A stretch of 64,000 bases of DNA. Origin: Obrimoposthia wandeli (lineage: Eukaryota). The notes under the pieces were generated by a model that had not been told where the DNA came from, did not search any database, and saw nothing but the letters and a program-made list of their open reading frames with translations. The translations under genes and the position numbers were made by a program. Below are positions 20,737 to 28,948 of this stretch, one piece after another. How positions within the stretch are numbered: position 1 is the stretch's first letter; each line of letters begins with the position of its first letter. The stretch lies in NCBI GenBank assembly GCA_977020255.1, contig CDROCS010000410.1, forward strand, positions 496,001 to 560,000, written 5' to 3'.

Positions 20737-22170
20737 CTAAGACAGCGACAATACACCCGTTGCTAATAGATAAATTGCACCGCCAGCACCGGCTAATAAC
20801 AGTGCTGAATAAACATAATCGCGCTTGCTAAATGTCTGTTGTTTTTCCGCCAATGCTTTTTTATAAATCAATACACCCGGTAAATACAACAGTGCACATA
20901 GCAGCATGTATTCAGCGCCTGCCGCATACACTAACCAAGCGCCGTAAAGCGATGAAACTAATGCAATAAACAAGTCTTTCTTACGGCTTTCAGTAGCACC
21001 GTAGCCTTCACCACTTAACGCCACTTTCACGCCATAGGCGCCAACAAGGAAGTAAGGTAATAATACCGCTGACGTCGCAATGTTTACCAAGGCAAGGTAC
21101 GAGCTTTCTTGGATCAGCGTTAAGATTAAAAACAGCTGCACCATACAAGACGAGAACCATAATGATGTCGTTGCCGCGCCTTTACTGTTTTCTGCCGCAA
21201 ATGCTTTCGGGAACAAACCTTCTTTAGCCGCGATAAAAGGCACTTCAGCGCTTACCACTGTCCAGCTTAATAACGCACCTGATACCGACACAATCAAACC
21301 GGCATTAATCAACATTGCGCCCCAAGGACCGACGATCACTTCTAAAATACTCGCCATTGAGGGATTTTGTAATGCAGCTACTTCTGGTTGAGTCATCACA
21401 CCTAAAGTGAATAAGCTCACCGCGATATACAATATTAACGCCGAGAACAAGGCAATACCCGTGGCTTTCGCTACATCGCGTTTGTCTTTCGCACGGTTAG
21501 ATAGAATGACCGCGCCTTCGATACCGATAAACACCCATAATGTCACCATCATGGTTGCTTTAACTTGCTCTAATACCGAACCTAATTCAGGAGTCTTATC
21601 GCCCCAGAAATCAAGGGTAAACTTGTCGATTTTAAACGCCATGATAACTAAACAAACGAAGGTCAAAATAGGAATGATTTTAGCGATGGTTGCGAATACA
21701 TTAATCAAGGCTGCGCGGGTCACACCACGTAATACCAAGGCATGCATGAACCAAATGAGTAACGAACCGCCTAATACTGCAATCGGCGTATTACCCTGCC
21801 CCATCATCGGGTTTTCAGGGGTATCGACAAAGTAACCAATCGCACTAAAGAACACCACAGCATAAGATACATTAGCTAATAAGTTACAGATCCAATAACC
21901 CCAAGCCGACATAAAACCGATGTAGTTACCAAAACCCGCTTGAGCGTACGAAAAAATACCACCGTTCAAATTAGGGAATCTCACCACTAAATTGCGTAAT
22001 ACAGTGACTAATGCCAGCATGCCACAACCAGTAATCAACCAGCCTAACGTGATTGCGCCAGGGGCTGCTGATACAGCGACATTTTGCGGTAGACTGAAGA
22101 TGCCAGCACCGACCATAGTACTGAATACCAAGGCGACTAACATGCCGAGTCCGAGTTTATTTTCCATCAA
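20737..22170 (-). CDS. APC-family basic amino acid/polyamine antiporter (ArcD-like)
   Basis: GAGIFSLP, WVFIGIEGA, about 12 TM segments. Substrate not determined. Confidence 0.85.
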   Translation of the reverse strand: MMENKLGLGMLVALVFSTMVGAGIFSLPQNVAVSAAPGAITLGWLITGCGMLALVTVLRNLVVRFPNLNGGIFSYAQAGFGNYIGFMSAWGYWICNLLANVSYAVVFFSAIGYFVDTPENPMMGQGNTPIAVLGGSLLIWFMHALVLRGVTRAALINVFATIAKIIPILTFVCLVIMAFKIDKFTLDFWGDKTPELGSVLEQVKATMMVTLWVFIGIEGAVILSNRAKDKRDVAKATGIALFSALILYIAVSLFTLGVMTQPEVAALQNPSMASILEVIVGPWGAMLINAGLIVSVSGALLSWTVVSAEVPFIAAKEGLFPKAFAAENSKGAATTSLWFSSCMVQLFLILTLIQESSYLALVNIATSAVLLPYFLVGAYGVKVALSGEGYGATESRKKDLFIALVSSLYGAWLVYAAGAEYMLLCALLYLPGVLIYKKALAEKQQTFSKRDYVYSALLLAGAGGAIYLLATGVLSLS

Positions 22171-22274
22171 TAATTCCTAATAAAGACCGAGATCCGACAC
22201 AATACGCCAGTAATAGTCTTATTTTCGTTAGTTAATATAATATGATTTAGCGAATTGTATTATATTATTTTATA

Positions 22275-22313
22275 TATGCAAGAATATTCACTTAATTTGC
22301 ATAAATCCAGACA
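22275..22313. promoter_or_regulatory. Possible tandem ARG boxes (ArgR) upstream of the antiporter
   Basis: TGCAA-GAAT-ATTCA at 22277-22290; a second, half-matching box (TGCAT at 22298) starts 3 bp after the first 18-mer, the usual ArgR spacing. Confidence 0.4.
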
Positions 22314-22436
22314 AGTGAGCAAGATTGCCGATAATGTGACCATAACTAAGCATCGCCCTATTAAACTTATCTTTTTTCCTTACATCTTGGCCTTCATTCA
22401 GTTAAAATATGGGGTTCGATTTCTTGCATAATAATA

Positions 22437-25400
22437 ATGATGATGACTGATTCTTCACAACAATATCTATGTCGCAAAACCTACCTTATTGATAGCTTTT
22501 GGCCTGGTAAATTACTCGAATTAAATAACGCGGGTAATATCAAGGTTGCAGGTACTAATGGTGCGGGTAAAACAACGTTACTTAAACTGCCTATGCTGTT
22601 TTGGGGGGCTCGACCTGGGCGTATTGTTGAGCGTAACGCGAACAAGAAATCATTTGCTGCTTATTATTTACCACGTAAAACCAGCTACATCGTGTTTGAC
22701 TATCAGCGTCCGAACGGTACTGACACACCACAATTGTGTCATGTATTAATTAAGAGTGATGGCGACAAGCTGCTGTATCGTTTTATTGATAGCCCATTCG
22801 ATATCAAGATGTACCTAGATGATAACGGCAACATCTTCGCTGATGACGAGATTAAGCGTCAATATAAAGCCCAGCATAAATGCGAAGTGAGTAGCCTGTT
22901 AAGTGTCGATGACTATGCAAGAGTCATTCAAAACCACCGCGACCTTGGCGGCAAGAAATCACTGCGCCCACTACAACAACGTTTTTCAATGAGCCAATCA
23001 CCGATTAAGCACATTGAAAAAGTAGTGACGTCAGTATTCAACAAAATATCTAATTTCGACGTGATCAAACAAATGATCATCGAGATCTCGCAAGATGCCA
23101 TCAGCTCAGAAATGCTCAGCAACAATGTTACCGATATGGTCAACATTGATAAAACCGACATTGATAGCTGGTTAGCGGATCTGCATTCATCACAAGCTAT
23201 TCTTAATTTAGAAGATAAGATCTTATCGTCATTAACTGACATTGACTCACTGATTGAAATCAAAGCCGATCTGCAGCATTTGCATCACCTTGCTGCACTC
23301 TATCAAGACAAGTGTAATCAAGATCAAGTGATCGCTGACACCCGTTTAAAAGACGTGCTAGTCGAACTTGCTGAATTAAAAGAAAACCACAGACAACAAG
23401 TCTTATCGATTGAAGATGCTTGTCACGATGAAGAAAAAGCGCACCGTGAAATTAAGCACGATTTAGATAAGTTAGAACAAGAAAAGATTGATTTTGAAGA
23501 TGATGAAGCAGCGACTTATCAACAACGTGGTTCTGAGCTGTCTGATTTTACCTTACGTTTAATCAATCTAAACAATGAAAAAACCCAGTTAAGTGAAAAG
23601 TCTGCCGATCTAAGCCGCACGTTTACAGAACAACAGCAGCAACAAGAACTTGAATTTAACAAACGCGAACAACAACTGACTAACGAAATTAGCTCTCAAC
23701 AGCAGCAATTAACCAACGCATTAAGCGAAAGTAACCTGCATTACGCGACGCTAGATAGTCAGTTAAAAACAGAAACTCAAGCCTTGATTGATCAGTTAAC
23801 GGAAAAGAAAACACCGTTAGAACACGCTAAGATCTCGCTTAACCTGCAACTTGCACAACCGCAGCTTGATCCGACACTGACACTACAATCACAACAGTTA
23901 CAACAGAATTTAAGCCAATGCCGCCGTAATATTAACGAGCGTCAGGAAGCCTATAACCGCATTGGTAATGAATCACAAAGCCTACGCCAAAAACAGCATC
24001 AAGCATTGCAAACCAATGACCGTTTAAAAATTGAATTAAACCACTTGGCCCAGCAGCACCGTGATGTGCAAGCATTATTAAGCCCAGAGAAAGGTTCTTT
24101 ACATGCCTTCTTGGTTGAACATGTGCCAAATTGGCAAGCGAATATCGGCCGTGTGATTAACCCTGAGTTACTCAAGCACCTGCACCTTGAACCTGAGTTA
24201 TTAGCCGCCTTTGCTGACGCTGCAAAAAATGGCGTGTCAGAAACAGCGCTCACTCAAATTCAAGATTTCTATGGCATCAAGATCAACCTTAACGCCCTAG
24301 AAAATGCATCATTTACCGACAGTGCATTAGCGGAAAAAGAACAGCATATTTCAACCCAAATCGGCGCGAAGAAAACAGAACTTGAGCAACTGCAAAAAGC
24401 CCTTGAGCAGCTAAACAAACAAGTTGAAGAGCTTGATAAACAGTTAATGTCGAGCAAGCAATTATTGTTCAAACAGAACCAATTGCTGACCGGTCTAGTC
24501 AATGAAGAAGATGAGTTAGTCGGCAAGCTAGAGCAACACAAGACCTTAGCGATTGCCCGTATTCAGACTGAATTAGCTGAAACTGAGTTATTGCTAGATC
24601 AAGCACAACAAGCATTAAGCCAAGCTAAAGTTGATTATCAAAGCCGTCACAACGAGCTGAACAACGAACGTTTAGGCGTGCATTGCCAGTTAGAGACAGA
24701 CTTCAATCAACGTATTGATAGCTATCAAACATCGCTAAACAATTTACGTGATGATGCACAAATTGAAATGCAACGTATCGCAGATGCCCTGCAAGCGGCA
24801 TTAAGTGACGCTGGTATTAATGCTAGTATCTTTAACGCCCTAGCAGCGAAAATCAAGCAAACTACCCAAGCTGTTGAGAATGCTAAAATATTCCAACAAA
24901 AAGCAGACAAATATAACAGCTGGTTAGAAACGTCATGGTCACAAGTTGAACCAGGTCGTGAGCGCTTACGTCGTTTAGATACCGCGATACACGGTTTCCA
25001 GCAGCAGTTAAAAGATAAAAAGCAAAACTATCAGCAATCAACTGACAAGTTAGAACAAGAGAAAACTCAGCTTGATAAACAAGTAAGCGATTTAGTATTA
25101 CAATTAAAAGGCTTAGATAACAGCCTCGTAAAACTAGCCGATTACCCTGCTGTGGCTAACGATGATTTACCAGAATACAGCGTTAACAATATCTCTAAAT
25201 TAACCAACAGTCAGATGAGCCTGTTAGGTAAACAGCAAAGCAATGTATTAAGCGCAGTGAGTAAAATCAGCAGCGAGTTAAAACGTTACTCGAAAAGCAC
25301 ACTGCAAACAGGTTGGTTAGAAAACCGCATCGAAAGTGATTCAGAACTGGTTAACTACCGTTTAGAAGAAGCGATTAACAGCGGCGAACAGCTAAGCTAC

Positions 25401-26255
25401 GTGCTGAAAAATGCTAAGTTATTACAAACATCGACCACACATGAAGTTGAACTGCGTGCGAACGATATCTTGTCTATCTATACCCATTTAAGTAACTTTG
25501 ATCGCAACATTACCCGTACTGGTCGTAAACTGTCTAGCCACATGAATGGTAAACAGTTCTTTACTGCCTTGGGTGATATTAAGATTGCTATCCGCACCAA
25601 GATGGACAAGTTAGGTTATTGGCAGCAGCTGGAAAATGTCAACGAGGCATTTGAAGCATACCAAGCCAATACGTCACTAACGCACGATCGCAGTATTCCC
25701 CAAGACTTGATCGACAGCTTAGATGAGCTGTCAGCGGTATTGCCGAAAAATAACAGCATGCAACATAATGAGCTGTTTGATATCGAATTCACTATTGTTG
25801 AAAACGGTCGTACGACCCGTGCTACCACACCGAAAGAATTAGAAGATGTATCATCAACCGGTTTATCTTACTTAGCCTTAATCACCTTCTTTACTGGTTT
25901 AACAACGATGTTACGCCCAGACGAGAGCACAGTGATCACTTGGCCTGTAGATGAATTAGGTGAGCTGCATTCTGAAAACATTCAAGCCATGTTGGATATG
26001 TTAAACCAACACGGTATTCAGATCATGACCGCATCACCGTCAACCGATAAGTCGGTATTACAGTTATTCGATCACTTATACGAGATTGATAGCCGTAACA
26101 AGCGTCTGATCCAAATGAATGTCGATGATGATCCATTAATGGCATTGCTCAATGGTGATGCGAAGCAAGCACTCATCGCTGACTCGAGCATTACGTCATC
26201 AGTAACAACGCCAGTAAACACAGCGTCAGCAACAACTATGCAAGAAGAGGTTTAA
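22437..26255 (+). CDS. SMC-like ATPase (MksB/JetC-like)
   Basis: Walker A GTNGAGKT near the N-terminus, about 900 aa of Q/E/L/K coiled coil, C-terminal SSTGLS signature and WPVDELGEL Walker B/D-loop. Confidence 0.85.
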   Translation: MMMTDSSQQYLCRKTYLIDSFWPGKLLELNNAGNIKVAGTNGAGKTTLLKLPMLFWGARPGRIVERNANKKSFAAYYLPRKTSYIVFDYQRPNGTDTPQLCHVLIKSDGDKLLYRFIDSPFDIKMYLDDNGNIFADDEIKRQYKAQHKCEVSSLLSVDDYARVIQNHRDLGGKKSLRPLQQRFSMSQSPIKHIEKVVTSVFNKISNFDVIKQMIIEISQDAISSEMLSNNVTDMVNIDKTDIDSWLADLHSSQAILNLEDKILSSLTDIDSLIEIKADLQHLHHLAALYQDKCNQDQVIADTRLKDVLVELAELKENHRQQVLSIEDACHDEEKAHREIKHDLDKLEQEKIDFEDDEAATYQQRGSELSDFTLRLINLNNEKTQLSEKSADLSRTFTEQQQQQELEFNKREQQLTNEISSQQQQLTNALSESNLHYATLDSQLKTETQALIDQLTEKKTPLEHAKISLNLQLAQPQLDPTLTLQSQQLQQNLSQCRRNINERQEAYNRIGNESQSLRQKQHQALQTNDRLKIELNHLAQQHRDVQALLSPEKGSLHAFLVEHVPNWQANIGRVINPELLKHLHLEPELLAAFADAAKNGVSETALTQIQDFYGIKINLNALENASFTDSALAEKEQHISTQIGAKKTELEQLQKALEQLNKQVEELDKQLMSSKQLLFKQNQLLTGLVNEEDELVGKLEQHKTLAIARIQTELAETELLLDQAQQALSQAKVDYQSRHNELNNERLGVHCQLETDFNQRIDSYQTSLNNLRDDAQIEMQRIADALQAALSDAGINASIFNALAAKIKQTTQAVENAKIFQQKADKYNSWLETSWSQVEPGRERLRRLDTAIHGFQQQLKDKKQNYQQSTDKLEQEKTQLDKQVSDLVLQLKGLDNSLVKLADYPAVANDDLPEYSVNNISKLTNSQMSLLGKQQSNVLSAVSKISSELKRYSKSTLQTGWLENRIESDSELVNYRLEEAINSGEQLSYVLKNAKLLQTSTTHEVELRANDILSIYTHLSNFDRNITRTGRKLSSHMNGKQFFTALGDIKIAIRTKMDKLGYWQQLENVNEAFEAYQANTSLTHDRSIPQDLIDSLDELSAVLPKNNSMQHNELFDIEFTIVENGRTTRATTPKELEDVSSTGLSYLALITFFTGLTTMLRPDESTVITWPVDELGELHSENIQAMLDMLNQHGIQIMTASPSTDKSVLQLFDHLYEIDSRNKRLIQMNVDDDPLMALLNGDAKQALIADSSITSSVTTPVNTASATTMQEEV

Positions 26256-26258
26256 CCC

Positions 26259-26891
26259 ATGTTTCAAACTACCGTTGAATTATTGTTACAGGGTCATACC
26301 ATTTGTCAGGTTAGTCGACCTGATGCTTATCGCTACCTGTCTGAGCAAAGCTTGTTTGAAAAGGTAAATGATTACCTGCGGTTGATTAACCGTAAAGTCA
26401 AAGTCATTGAAGATGGCCTTGCTTTTGTTGCTTGTTATTGCACGATTGAAGAAGAAAACCGCGCGGATATTCGTCAACAATTACGTCAAGTACGTGACAT
26501 TTTCCGTCCATTGGTTAACTTCTTAGACTTGGCAATGACAGCTCTAGTACACGACTGTGCAATGCGCGCTGGCGATACGATTCGCTTGTCTGAGTTATTA
26601 CGTGGTATTGAAAACGAGCCAACGTTAAAGCAACAATTGGCGCTATTAACCAATAAAGGTATTTTCAAAACCAGCCGTAACGACATTTCTGAACAGCTTA
26701 ACTTCATCCTTAAAAAACTCGATGAAGCAGGTTACGTACAACGCCTTGATACCGGCAGTACCATTTATCAGATCACGGCTAAGATGAACTACATTCACGA
26801 ATTAATTGATTTTATTAATGACAGTGAATCGTTGAAACTCGAAAAACAAGATAACAATATCTTCGATGACTCACAGTCGGAGATGTTCTAA
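26259..26891 (+). CDS. Putative kite subunit (MksE/JetB-like)
   Basis: 210 aa, 3 bp after the SMC stop. Size, position and the C-terminal KKLDEAGYVQR helix fit a winged-helix kite; the assignment is inferred. Confidence 0.6.
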   Translation: MFQTTVELLLQGHTICQVSRPDAYRYLSEQSLFEKVNDYLRLINRKVKVIEDGLAFVACYCTIEEENRADIRQQLRQVRDIFRPLVNFLDLAMTALVHDCAMRAGDTIRLSELLRGIENEPTLKQQLALLTNKGIFKTSRNDISEQLNFILKKLDEAGYVQRLDTGSTIYQITAKMNYIHELIDFINDSESLKLEKQDNNIFDDSQSEMF

Positions 26892-28165
26892 TGTCACAGC
26901 AGCAAAGCGCTTCTGAAGTCGAAAAAATTGCCCAGATAATCCGTAGCTCGTTTGCTAAATCAAACAGTACGATGTTGGCGCAAGCGTATTTCGATGGCAA
27001 TGTGATGGATGATGGTGAAAACACAGCATTATTAGAAATGCTCACCAAAAATGGTCTGATCCGCCCAAGTGAAGAAGATGGCACTTACATGCTTGCCATC
27101 AATTTAAAGCGTATTTTAGACAAGTTATTATTACGTCATGCGTCTTATCGCAAACGTACCGATATCGCTAAAGTCATGCAACACATCGACGGTGATATCA
27201 AATCCTATAAACGTGCGTTATTAATTGGCCAACACAATGAAGTTGCCTTCTATTTAAGCCAAGTGGACGAAGAGCTTTACGGCATTGTTTACGAGTTAGA
27301 AGACAGTGTTAGCGGTTTGTTCGCTGCCATCACCAGTAAATTTGGTTTTGTTGATAGTCTAGAAAGCAAAATTCATGAGAATGAAAAAGCCATCGCTTAT
27401 ACCGAAGGCCTGCTTAACGCATTAGCGGATATTAATCTTAACGATGTTTATGCCTGGTTAGATTGGGATGATGTCCCTGCAGAATTAAGCCGTAAAGTGA
27501 CCTTCTTTATTGATGGTTACCGTCGTATTAACCGTCAGTTAGAAGGCGCTGTTCACCGTATGCGTCAGTTGTTAATGACGCTGCGTAAACAAAATGAACA
27601 AGTTGCGCGTCTCAAAGCTATGTCTAAGTACCTCAAAGACAATCCGATTTGGGAAATAGACGGTTACGATGAGCGTGAGCACATACCAAGTATCTTCAAC
27701 CGCGTAGCCCCTTTACCGTTATCAGCCAGTGTTGATATTAGTAATCAGGTACAGCAAGAAGAACTCACCGATATTTATAACTCGTTGCGCCAAGAAACTA
27801 AGTCAGACGCTGAAACCGTTGATTTACGTAGTAGTGGTCGTATTGATGACTTGCAACAAAAGGCCCGTGAACTCGAAGCCGATTATGTATTGTCGCAATG
27901 TGAAGCGTTATTTAAACAAGTATTAAGCAATAAAGGCGATAGTTTCTCTGCCCTGCACTATTGGCAGCAAGACGGTCAGCTCACTGACATTTTACCTCAG
28001 CATTTATGGCTGAGTATCCTGTATAACGAATATCACAAGTGTGCCCCAGCGGTACGTAAAGTCATGGCCATCGATTTCCCTGATGCCTTAATGACAGATA
28101 TACCGGGGTCGATATTAGTCTCAGGTAATTTACGTGTGAGTGATATTCAACTACAACGCGCTTAA
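26891..28165 (+). CDS. Putative kleisin subunit (MksF/JetA-like)
   Basis: 424 aa, TAATG-coupled to the previous gene; N-terminal wHTH-like segment (LLEMLTKNGLIR) then helical. The assignment is inferred. Confidence 0.55.
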   Translation: MSQQQSASEVEKIAQIIRSSFAKSNSTMLAQAYFDGNVMDDGENTALLEMLTKNGLIRPSEEDGTYMLAINLKRILDKLLLRHASYRKRTDIAKVMQHIDGDIKSYKRALLIGQHNEVAFYLSQVDEELYGIVYELEDSVSGLFAAITSKFGFVDSLESKIHENEKAIAYTEGLLNALADINLNDVYAWLDWDDVPAELSRKVTFFIDGYRRINRQLEGAVHRMRQLLMTLRKQNEQVARLKAMSKYLKDNPIWEIDGYDEREHIPSIFNRVAPLPLSASVDISNQVQQEELTDIYNSLRQETKSDAETVDLRSSGRIDDLQQKARELEADYVLSQCEALFKQVLSNKGDSFSALHYWQQDGQLTDILPQHLWLSILYNEYHKCAPAVRKVMAIDFPDALMTDIPGSILVSGNLRVSDIQLQRA

Positions 28166-28192
28166 TCCCTTCTAAACAGGTACCAATTATCC

Positions 28193-28948
28193 ATGTTTGA
28201 ACTTAAAAAAATAATTGGTACTTGGCTAATGCCACTGCCATTCCTGCTAACCCTTTTTATTCTTGCGGCACTATTATATAAACTCACCCGTTATAAACGC
28301 AGTGGTCAAATCCTATTTTGTAGTAGTTTTATTACATTATTGCTATTAAGCCTAGATCCGGTTGCTACGCGTTTAGCTGCTACATTAGAGTCTCAGTACC
28401 CAAGTTATCAGCATCAAACTGTCGATTATATCCACGTATTGGGCAATGGTCACACGACTGTAGACAGCTTGCCAATCACCAGTCAACTTAGTCCAGCTGC
28501 CCTTGCCAGAACCACTGAAGGCGTACGGATTTATAAACTGAACCCCACGGCCAAGTTAATTTTCAGTGGTTATGCTAGCGGTGATATCAACAGTAATGCC
28601 AAGATGAATGCGCGCTTAGCAATGGCATTAGGGGTGCCTAAATCAGCCATTATATTATTAGAATCTCCTCGTGACACTATCGAGGAAGCTATTGAAAATA
28701 AAAACATTACTAAGGGTAAATCGCTTGTATTAGTTACCTCGGCTACCCACATGCCGCGGGCAATGAAAATATTCCAGCAACAAGGTCTATCCCCTATCCC
28801 GGCTCCGACTGCGCATGTCAGTAAAACTCGCACAGGGATACAACCATTACACTATTATTTCCCGCGAGCGAATCACTTAGCCGTGAGTGAAAGAGCTATC
28901 CATGAATGGTTAGGACTAGCTTGGTTGTCGTTAAAAAATAACCAATAG
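28193..28948 (+). CDS. elyC: Envelope biogenesis factor ElyC (DUF218)
   Basis: N-terminal TMs, IHVLGNG, LIFSG, RDTIEEA, LVTSATHMPRA, HEWLG. Confidence 0.88.
   Translation: MFELKKIIGTWLMPLPFLLTLFILAALLYKLTRYKRSGQILFCSSFITLLLLSLDPVATRLAATLESQYPSYQHQTVDYIHVLGNGHTTVDSLPITSQLSPAALARTTEGVRIYKLNPTAKLIFSGYASGDINSNAKMNARLAMALGVPKSAIILLESPRDTIEEAIENKNITKGKSLVLVTSATHMPRAMKIFQQQGLSPIPAPTAHVSKTRTGIQPLHYYFPRANHLAVSERAIHEWLGLAWLSLKNNQ

Follow-up and report, generated by a model that had tools for sequence, protein, structure and literature searches.

The 64,000-nucleotide stretch of DNA analysed here (the window; positions 496,001 to 560,000 of contig CDROCS010000410.1) carries three genes, B, E and F, which code for an ABC ATPase like those of the structural maintenance of chromosomes (SMC) proteins, a kite protein and a predicted kleisin. 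We find that this triplet is a four-gene B-E-F-G operon after clean deletion of G, the gene for a putative Toprim protein of the DUF7281 family, and that G has been lost repeatedly and independently in Moritella, Colwellia and other lineages. After the loss of G, the remaining genes have stayed under strong purifying selection. The family is a Wadjet/Mks-like SMC system with reversed gene order and divergent parts, of which the window holds a naturally disarmed copy. The architecture and the evolutionary history of this system are well supported; its cellular role is what we infer from them and from related systems.

The protein encoded by F is 97% identical to a protein of Moritella sp. F3, and the host of the window is a Moritella. 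The assembly that contains the window (G000) is a 1.35-Gb mixture of 6912 contigs from at least two Moritella, a Colwellia-like and a Photobacterium-like bacterium, and searches of the whole assembly do not describe one organism.

The triplet is a four-gene operon without its last gene

The genes and the junction that follows them are located in the window as follows.

22437-26255, + strand: B gene, SMC-like ABC ATPase of the DUF3584 family, 1272 aa (open reading frame; Pfam PF12128)
26259-26891, + strand: E gene, kite of the MksE family, 210 aa (open reading frame; Pfam PF21980)
26891-28165, + strand: F gene, putative kleisin, 424 aa (open reading frame; predicted fold)
28166-28192, + strand: deletion junction, a 27-bp spacer replacing the ~900-bp DUF7281 Toprim gene of relatives (synteny alignment)

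An initial annotation of this DNA, made from the sequence alone, had described three tightly coupled genes with no Toprim nuclease adjoining them, and both observations stood. B and E are separated by 3 nt (TAA ccc ATG) and E and F overlap in TAATG, as read directly from the letters. No Toprim or DUF7281 gene was found in the window when 14 G proteins served as tblastn queries (best E 0.45).

Four DUF3584 loci are present in the assembly, two from Moritella, one Colwellia-like and one Photobacterium-like. The three loci other than that of the window have the order B-E-F followed by a fourth gene of ~300 aa, which matches Pfam DUF7281 with E values of 1e-30 to 1e-39. Contig C1957 (L011), from the second Moritella, is syntenic with the window and carries G between F and elyC. 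Alignment of the two showed high identity up to the stop codon of F and again from the start of elyC, with the 906-bp G gene exactly absent from the window and the 27-bp spacer in its place. The description of the triplet as standing alone without a nuclease partner is correct for the copy in the window and incorrect for the family, in which a DUF7281 gene directly after F is normal.

The junction sequence of the window was also found in Moritella sp. F3 and JT01. In Moritella dasanensis, the B-E-F genes of which are almost identical to those of the G-plus C1957 lineage, the spacer is 164 bp long, and a basal lineage has a third type, giving at least three junction types in the genus. No recognisable remnants of G were found in the Moritella junction spacers. 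At least eight changes of G state are needed on the B-E-F tree.

Several other arrangements were seen around this junction. JT01 (L024) has the junction of the window, yet its B-E-F genes group with those of the G-plus PE36 and DT_65 (support 98). Transfer of the deletion allele by homologous recombination could account for this, as could an old polymorphism. In one Colwellia metagenome-assembled genome (L046, 8321-8386), 22 aa of G survive downstream of F, and the next gene, of 343 aa, is on the opposite strand. A few genomes have ordinary genes inserted between F and G, for example those for an L,D-transpeptidase, an aminotransferase and an alcohol dehydrogenase (L055, 2582-7232). In Colwellia psychrerythraea GAB14E (L031, 8293-12517, with L057) the insert between F and G is ~20 kb long and includes an acyl-CoA dehydrogenase, a LolA-like gene and an AMP-binding enzyme. 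Insertions and deletions seem to have a hot spot at the F-G junction.

Distribution of the operon

We compared 31 loci from Moritella, Colwellia, Ferrimonas, Idiomarina and Photobacterium, and searched 301 species genomes that evenly sample the GTDB order containing Moritella. The order B-E-F was found in all 31 loci, with G next in 21 of them. The reversed gene order that had been remarked on is real, and it is not special to the window, being universal in the 31 loci and in the 301-genome sample. In that sample B was present in 108 genomes, together with G in 62 (57%) and without it in 46 (43%), while G without B was detected in two genomes, both weak matches. In 58 of the 62 genomes with both genes, the DUF7281 match follows the B match on one strand and starts 2.2-2.7 kb behind its end. 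Of the other four, three have ordinary metabolic genes inserted between F and G, and one has B and G on different contigs. Among 351 genomes sampled across the phylum, DUF7281 was found in 7 further genomes outside the order, all with lower scores.

Throughout Moritella, the locus lies at the same core chromosomal position and is inherited vertically. An F-like gene was present in only 3 of 72,556 plasmid records. One complete B-E-F-G operon (L058, 819-8569) was seen on the Enterobacter hormaechei IncC plasmid pVIM-Exn692 (NZ_OR497351.1), where B is split by an IS256-like ISSod4 transposase and the operon adjoins a CBASS system (nucleotidyltransferase, ThiF-like, MPN and SAVED genes) and an ImmA/IrrE-HTH pair.

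G remotely resembles the Wadjet nuclease JetD

Judged by its sequence, G appears to be a Toprim protein remotely like JetD, the nuclease of Wadjet. It showed weak matches to JetD_C and to the Toprim domain of Topo VI/Spo11, and matched the PADLOC model JetD1 with an E value of 3e-9. In an alignment of 17 members, Glu-Asn, YRG and DxDPxG were invariant, which is the Toprim catalytic pattern.

No DUF7281 gene was detected in four G-less related genomes. The whole 1.35-Gb assembly held three copies only, each beside its own B gene, and no orphan. An orphan jetD elsewhere was rejected as a candidate, since these searches, as well as a search of Moritella and Colwellia for JetA-type Wadjet, were all negative. 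The suggestion that an effector is encoded elsewhere was not borne out by these searches.

B is an SMC-like ATPase, E a kite and F a predicted kleisin

The B protein matches Pfam PF12128 (DUF3584) from end to end (aa 17-1218, E 4.6e-187). Split halves of the head flank a long coiled coil, as is general for SMC ATPases, and the motifs comprise a Walker A sequence (GTNGAGKTT, aa 39-47), a Q-loop Gln near aa 164, the signature SSTGLS (aa 1140-1145) and a Walker B sequence ending in VDE (aa 1171-1173). At nearly every motif position, at least 90% of the 31 aligned members, nuclease-lacking ones included, share one residue, and at many positions all 31 do. The DUF3584 match and this alignment confirm the split ATPase halves, the coiled coil and the atypical signature that had been noted in the 1272-aa protein. 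The PADLOC model JetC1 reached B with an E value of only 0.0022, over ~50 aa; a search of PDB sequences with B gave no relative, and NCBIfam gave nothing useful for B, E or F.

E matches Pfam PF21980 (MksE) with an E value of 4.9e-8 and 33.9 bits, above the cut-off of 27, which identifies it as a kite. The copy in the window had no PADLOC match, and the E proteins of relatives reached JetB1 at an E value of ~0.002 only. F, on the other hand, had no match in Pfam, NCBIfam or PADLOC. The earlier statement that the 210-aa and 424-aa proteins have no recognisable motif is consequently right for F and wrong for E. A word-based protein search with F reached Moritella proteins only, and an exhaustive profile search was needed to recover the wider family; it returned 421 clusters of ~400-420 aa, and the named ones that were looked up were all annotated as hypothetical.

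In its AlphaFold model, built from a 95-sequence alignment and of good confidence (pLDDT 86.4), F comprises an N-terminal winged helix (~aa 1-79), a helical bundle (92-250), a flexible, disordered linker (251-331) and a C-terminal winged helix (332-424). When an earlier, shallower model of F was compared with 350,542 PDB chains using Foldseek, the top 14 matches were all MukF or JetA, with marginal E values (best 1.6e-3); MukF and JetA were also the top matches of F in VIA. Profile searches of PDB sequences with E, F and G found no relative, and the alignment of the F profile with one MukF sequence (hhalign) was not significant (probability 2.8%). The predicted structure supports the assignment of F as a MukF/JetA-type kleisin.

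We also predicted the complex of E with F. The ipSAE was 0.81, compared to 0.01 for the best of three controls, and the mark set for such a prediction was reached by 51 of 78 solved complexes and by 2 of 108 mismatched pairs. The prediction runs agreed in at least 81% of contacts, and the partner pLDDT was at least 81. The predicted contact of E on F covers aa 234-277, from the last part of the bundle into the first part of the linker, which is the kite-binding region of kleisins. The modelling supports binding of E to F, and the reading of the triplet as SMC, kite and kleisin is upheld by Pfam for the kite, by the predicted fold for the kleisin and by this controlled prediction for the complex. 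An effector hidden in the 424-aa subunit, which had also been proposed, was ruled out, because kleisin domains and linker account for the whole chain.

B, E and F are maintained after the loss of G

We estimated the ratio of nonsynonymous to synonymous substitution rates (dN/dS) for pairs of operons. Between the window and Moritella sp. F3, both of which lack G, dN/dS was 0.034 for B, 0.029 for E and 0.028 for F, at dS values of 0.37-0.46. Other pairs in which both members lack G gave values of 0.03-0.05, G-plus pairs were no lower, and the G-less pairs spanned dS values of 0.37-1.2. A dN/dS of ~0.03 in G-less pairs indicates that B, E and F have a job that does not need G.

Sequences surrounding the triplet

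Two further features lie upstream of B.

20737-22170, - strand: APC-family basic amino acid antiporter, upstream neighbour (Pfam and NCBIfam scans)
22171-22436, + strand: intergenic region 5' of B, the presumed promoter region of the operon

Downstream of F, the Pfam and NCBIfam scans identified elyC, tpiA and pfkA, in agreement with the transporter and elyC-tpiA that the initial annotation had named as neighbours. The GC content is uniform over the region of the triplet. Two weak sigma-70-like matches, each at 9 of 12 positions, are found 5' of B (22308-22335 and 22379-22408), and the number of sites in the promoter and terminator scan was not above that in shuffled sequence.

In the G-less allele, base pairing between the junction spacer and codons 7-11 of elyC gives a 12-13-bp hairpin around the elyC start codon (window 28179-28222; -17.8 kcal/mol, z -3.2); G-plus alleles carry other spacers. 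The hairpin may have been left behind by the deletion, or may act as a brake on translation of elyC.

Other SMC complexes in carriers of the operon

Since the assembly is mixed, the inventory of condensins was made on named Moritella genomes. Those genomes contain Smc (~920 bits) and ScpA, and neither MukB nor JetA was found in them; a Moritella-type Smc is also present in the assembly. The check for mukBEF, smc-scpAB and jetD that had been suggested for this host thus gave Smc with ScpA, without MukB, JetA or, in the assembly, an orphan DUF7281. PF04310 (MukF/KicB) had no match in the Moritella or Colwellia genomes. The single MukBEF locus of the assembly lies on contig C3840, to which no host was assigned, and it is unlikely to belong to Moritella because no searched Moritella genome has MukB. 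As Moritella has Smc and ScpA, the triplet would be a second SMC complex there.

A different picture was obtained in Colwellia. In all ten genomes searched (G003, G004, G007-G014; loci L028-L043), no canonical Smc, ScpA, MukB or JetA family was found, and the DUF3584 operon was the only SMC-kleisin system detected. Among the 108 carriers of B in the order, 31 (~29%) had no detectable Smc, ScpA, MukB or, where tested, JetA-type kleisin. B and MukB occurred together in 3 genomes of the 301-genome sample, compared to ~41 expected if the two were independent, in a count that ignores phylogeny.

What the triplet may do

By likeness to MukBEF and JetABC, F would close dimers of B into an ATP-driven ring that entraps DNA or extrudes loops, and E would sit on the middle of F. 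Where G is present, it would be recruited beside the kleisin and would cut the DNA captured by the motor. In the G-less Moritella nothing would be cut, and the complex would keep a job independent of the nuclease. That job is most likely chromosomal, and may be long-range organisation, a back-up for segregation or tolerance of DNA damage, exercised beside Smc-ScpAB. We consider it probable that the triplet is a nuclease-deleted form of B-E-F-G with such a nuclease-independent, most likely chromosomal role, like the MksBEF of Pseudomonas aeruginosa. By this analogy, a chromosome-directed, secondary SMC role in Moritella is the most likely one. The secondary condensin put forward in the initial annotation stays the best reading in this respect, with a function that we take from the analogy; the triplet is not a P. 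aeruginosa-type MksBEF itself, the operon order there being mksFEB. Indirect support for a chromosomal role comes from the constant core position of the locus in Moritella, from the rarity of F-like genes on plasmids, from the near-exclusion of MukB, and from the 31 carriers and the ten Colwellia genomes in which no other SMC complex was detected. A further point is that in three Shewanella species a DUF3584 gene shows cofitness with the two genes beside it, and that cisplatin resistance and motility require all three (bioRxiv 10.1101/072470).

Several points weigh against the reading that we prefer. For Moritella, the chromosomal role is suggested by analogy and by indirect genomics. The kleisin assignment of F rests on predicted structure, as the PDB profile search and hhalign with one MukF sequence gave no sequence link. 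The four-gene form adjoins a CBASS system on an IncC plasmid, a neighbourhood that points to defence as the trade of the family. G is kept in 25 of 32 carriers without ScpA and MukB, compared to 34 of 73 with ScpA (Fisher p 0.003, ignoring phylogeny). This higher retention in carriers that lack ScpA and MukB does not fit a simple story in which loss of the nuclease makes a condensin; the pattern fits neither a simple condensin nor a simple defence story.

Defence without cutting is an explanation that we consider unlikely. B-E-F might still sense small circular or foreign DNA and restrict it by entrapment, compaction or interference with partition, as has been proposed for Smc5/6 acting on episomes, and the triplet would then be an immune system and not a chromosome organiser. 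The family is a remote relative of Wadjet, as judged from the match of G to JetD1, a copy of the operon lies next to CBASS on a conjugative plasmid, and the presence of G varies between near-identical Moritella lineages, as it does for accessory immune genes; a review discusses how Smc5/6 restricts extrachromosomal DNA by entrapment and compaction (PMC10586767). However, the locus is fixed at one core position and vertically inherited across Moritella, the Shewanella phenotypes of cisplatin sensitivity and motility were obtained in assays without added plasmids, and no SMC complex other than B-E-F was detected in 31 of 108 carriers. We give a still lower probability to a replacement of DUF7281 by an unrelated nuclease or other effector that would act in trans, from a gene elsewhere, and bind to the kleisin. 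The strong conservation of F, including its linker and C-terminal domain, would agree with a docking function, the kleisin is the docking site of MksG in Corynebacterium glutamicum (PMC10123090), and sequence searches are blind to a non-homologous partner. Against this stand the absence of DUF7281 from the four G-less genomes, the lack of an orphan copy in the assembly, and the lack of a JetA-type Wadjet system in Moritella and Colwellia. Nor is there a conserved fourth gene beside G-less operons, as the downstream genes vary by lineage (elyC, acyl-CoA dehydrogenase, protease, LacI regulator). Finally, the three genes could be a decaying remnant, useless without the nuclease and on their way to being lost, as commonly happens to defence systems that lose their effector; one plasmid copy does have B split by an IS256-like element. 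This is highly improbable, being contradicted by the dN/dS of ~0.03 at dS values of 0.37-1.2 in pairs that both lack G, by full-length reading frames with intact ATPase motifs, and by the 43% of carrier species that are G-less yet have an intact B.

A wider proposal, which we put forward tentatively and regard as possible, is that B-E-F(-G) is an unrecognised major lineage of chromosome-acting SMC complexes in marine gammaproteobacteria, with a facultative Toprim nuclease, which nearly excludes MukBEF and is the only SMC-kleisin complex detected in ~29% of its carriers. If true, the family would be a living intermediate between plasmid-cutting Wadjet and nuclease-free condensins, and near-isogenic pairs with and without the nuclease, such as Moritella dasanensis and its sister lineage, would make the transition from defence to condensin directly testable.

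Comparison with known systems

The canonical operon orders are mukFEB, mksFEB and mksFEBG/jetABCD (bioRxiv 10.1101/2020.05.18.101659; PMC10586767; PMC10123090), in agreement with the kleisin-kite-SMC order that had been quoted for MukFEB and Wadjet. In Wadjet (JetABCD, also MksBEFG and EptABCD; types I-III), the order is kleisin-kite-SMC-nuclease (mksFEBG, PMC10123090), whereas it is SMC-kite-kleisin-nuclease in the B-E-F family. The PADLOC models for JetA and JetB miss the proteins of the window, and JetC reaches B at an E value of 0.0022 only. JetD models are ~345-430 aa long, compared to ~300 aa for G, and the JetD-type nuclease that belongs to the Wadjet operon has no equivalent in the copy of the window, although G is present in 21 of the 31 related loci. 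A further difference from Wadjet is the fixation of the B-E-F locus in the core chromosome of Moritella. In B-E-F-G operons the G gene adjoins the kleisin gene, and the C. glutamicum kleisin docks MksG (PMC10123090). The triplet has no Pfam matches to MukB, MukF or MukE; B is ~1270 aa long, compared to ~1490 aa for MukB, and the gene order is reversed with respect to MukBEF.

The triplet resembles the MksBEF of P. aeruginosa in being a nuclease-free trio of SMC, kite and kleisin that coexists with Smc-ScpAB, and the kite of the window belongs to Pfam MksE. The P. aeruginosa operon is mksFEB (bioRxiv 10.1101/2020.05.18.101659) and not B-E-F, a distinction that we draw by gene order. A JetABCD-type system that lost JetD has been proposed as the origin of P. 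aeruginosa MksBEF (PMC10586767); in the B-E-F family, by contrast, the nuclease was lost recently and more than once, and one genus still contains both states.

The closest case that we found in the literature is the Shewanella cluster Sama_0592 to Sama_0594 (Price et al.), which has the same Pfam DUF3584 and two unannotated cofit neighbours, a likeness of family and description, and is probably the same operon family. There it is called only an "smc-like chromosome partitioning protein", with no identification of the kite, kleisin or Toprim partner. Among the papers searched, which did not include Petrushenko et al. 2011, none mentions DUF7281, and Price et al. alone discuss what DUF3584 does. 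No Wadjet type with reversed gene order was found described in these papers, and an earlier mention of this branch is possible.

The family is common, occurring in 108 of 301 species of the order, and is often the sole detectable SMC complex. Current defence models miss it, and its kleisin is annotated as hypothetical. Reviews speculate that Wadjet-like defence systems gave rise to the condensins MukBEF and MksBEF when they lost the nuclease, a step that has so far been inferred from deep comparisons only. In the B-E-F(-G) family this step is happening repeatedly and recently. Sister lineages of Moritella carry the same operon at the same chromosomal site with and without the Toprim gene, and their motor genes are equally constrained. 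Such natural pairs of strains allow one to ask what a disarmed SMC defence motor does.

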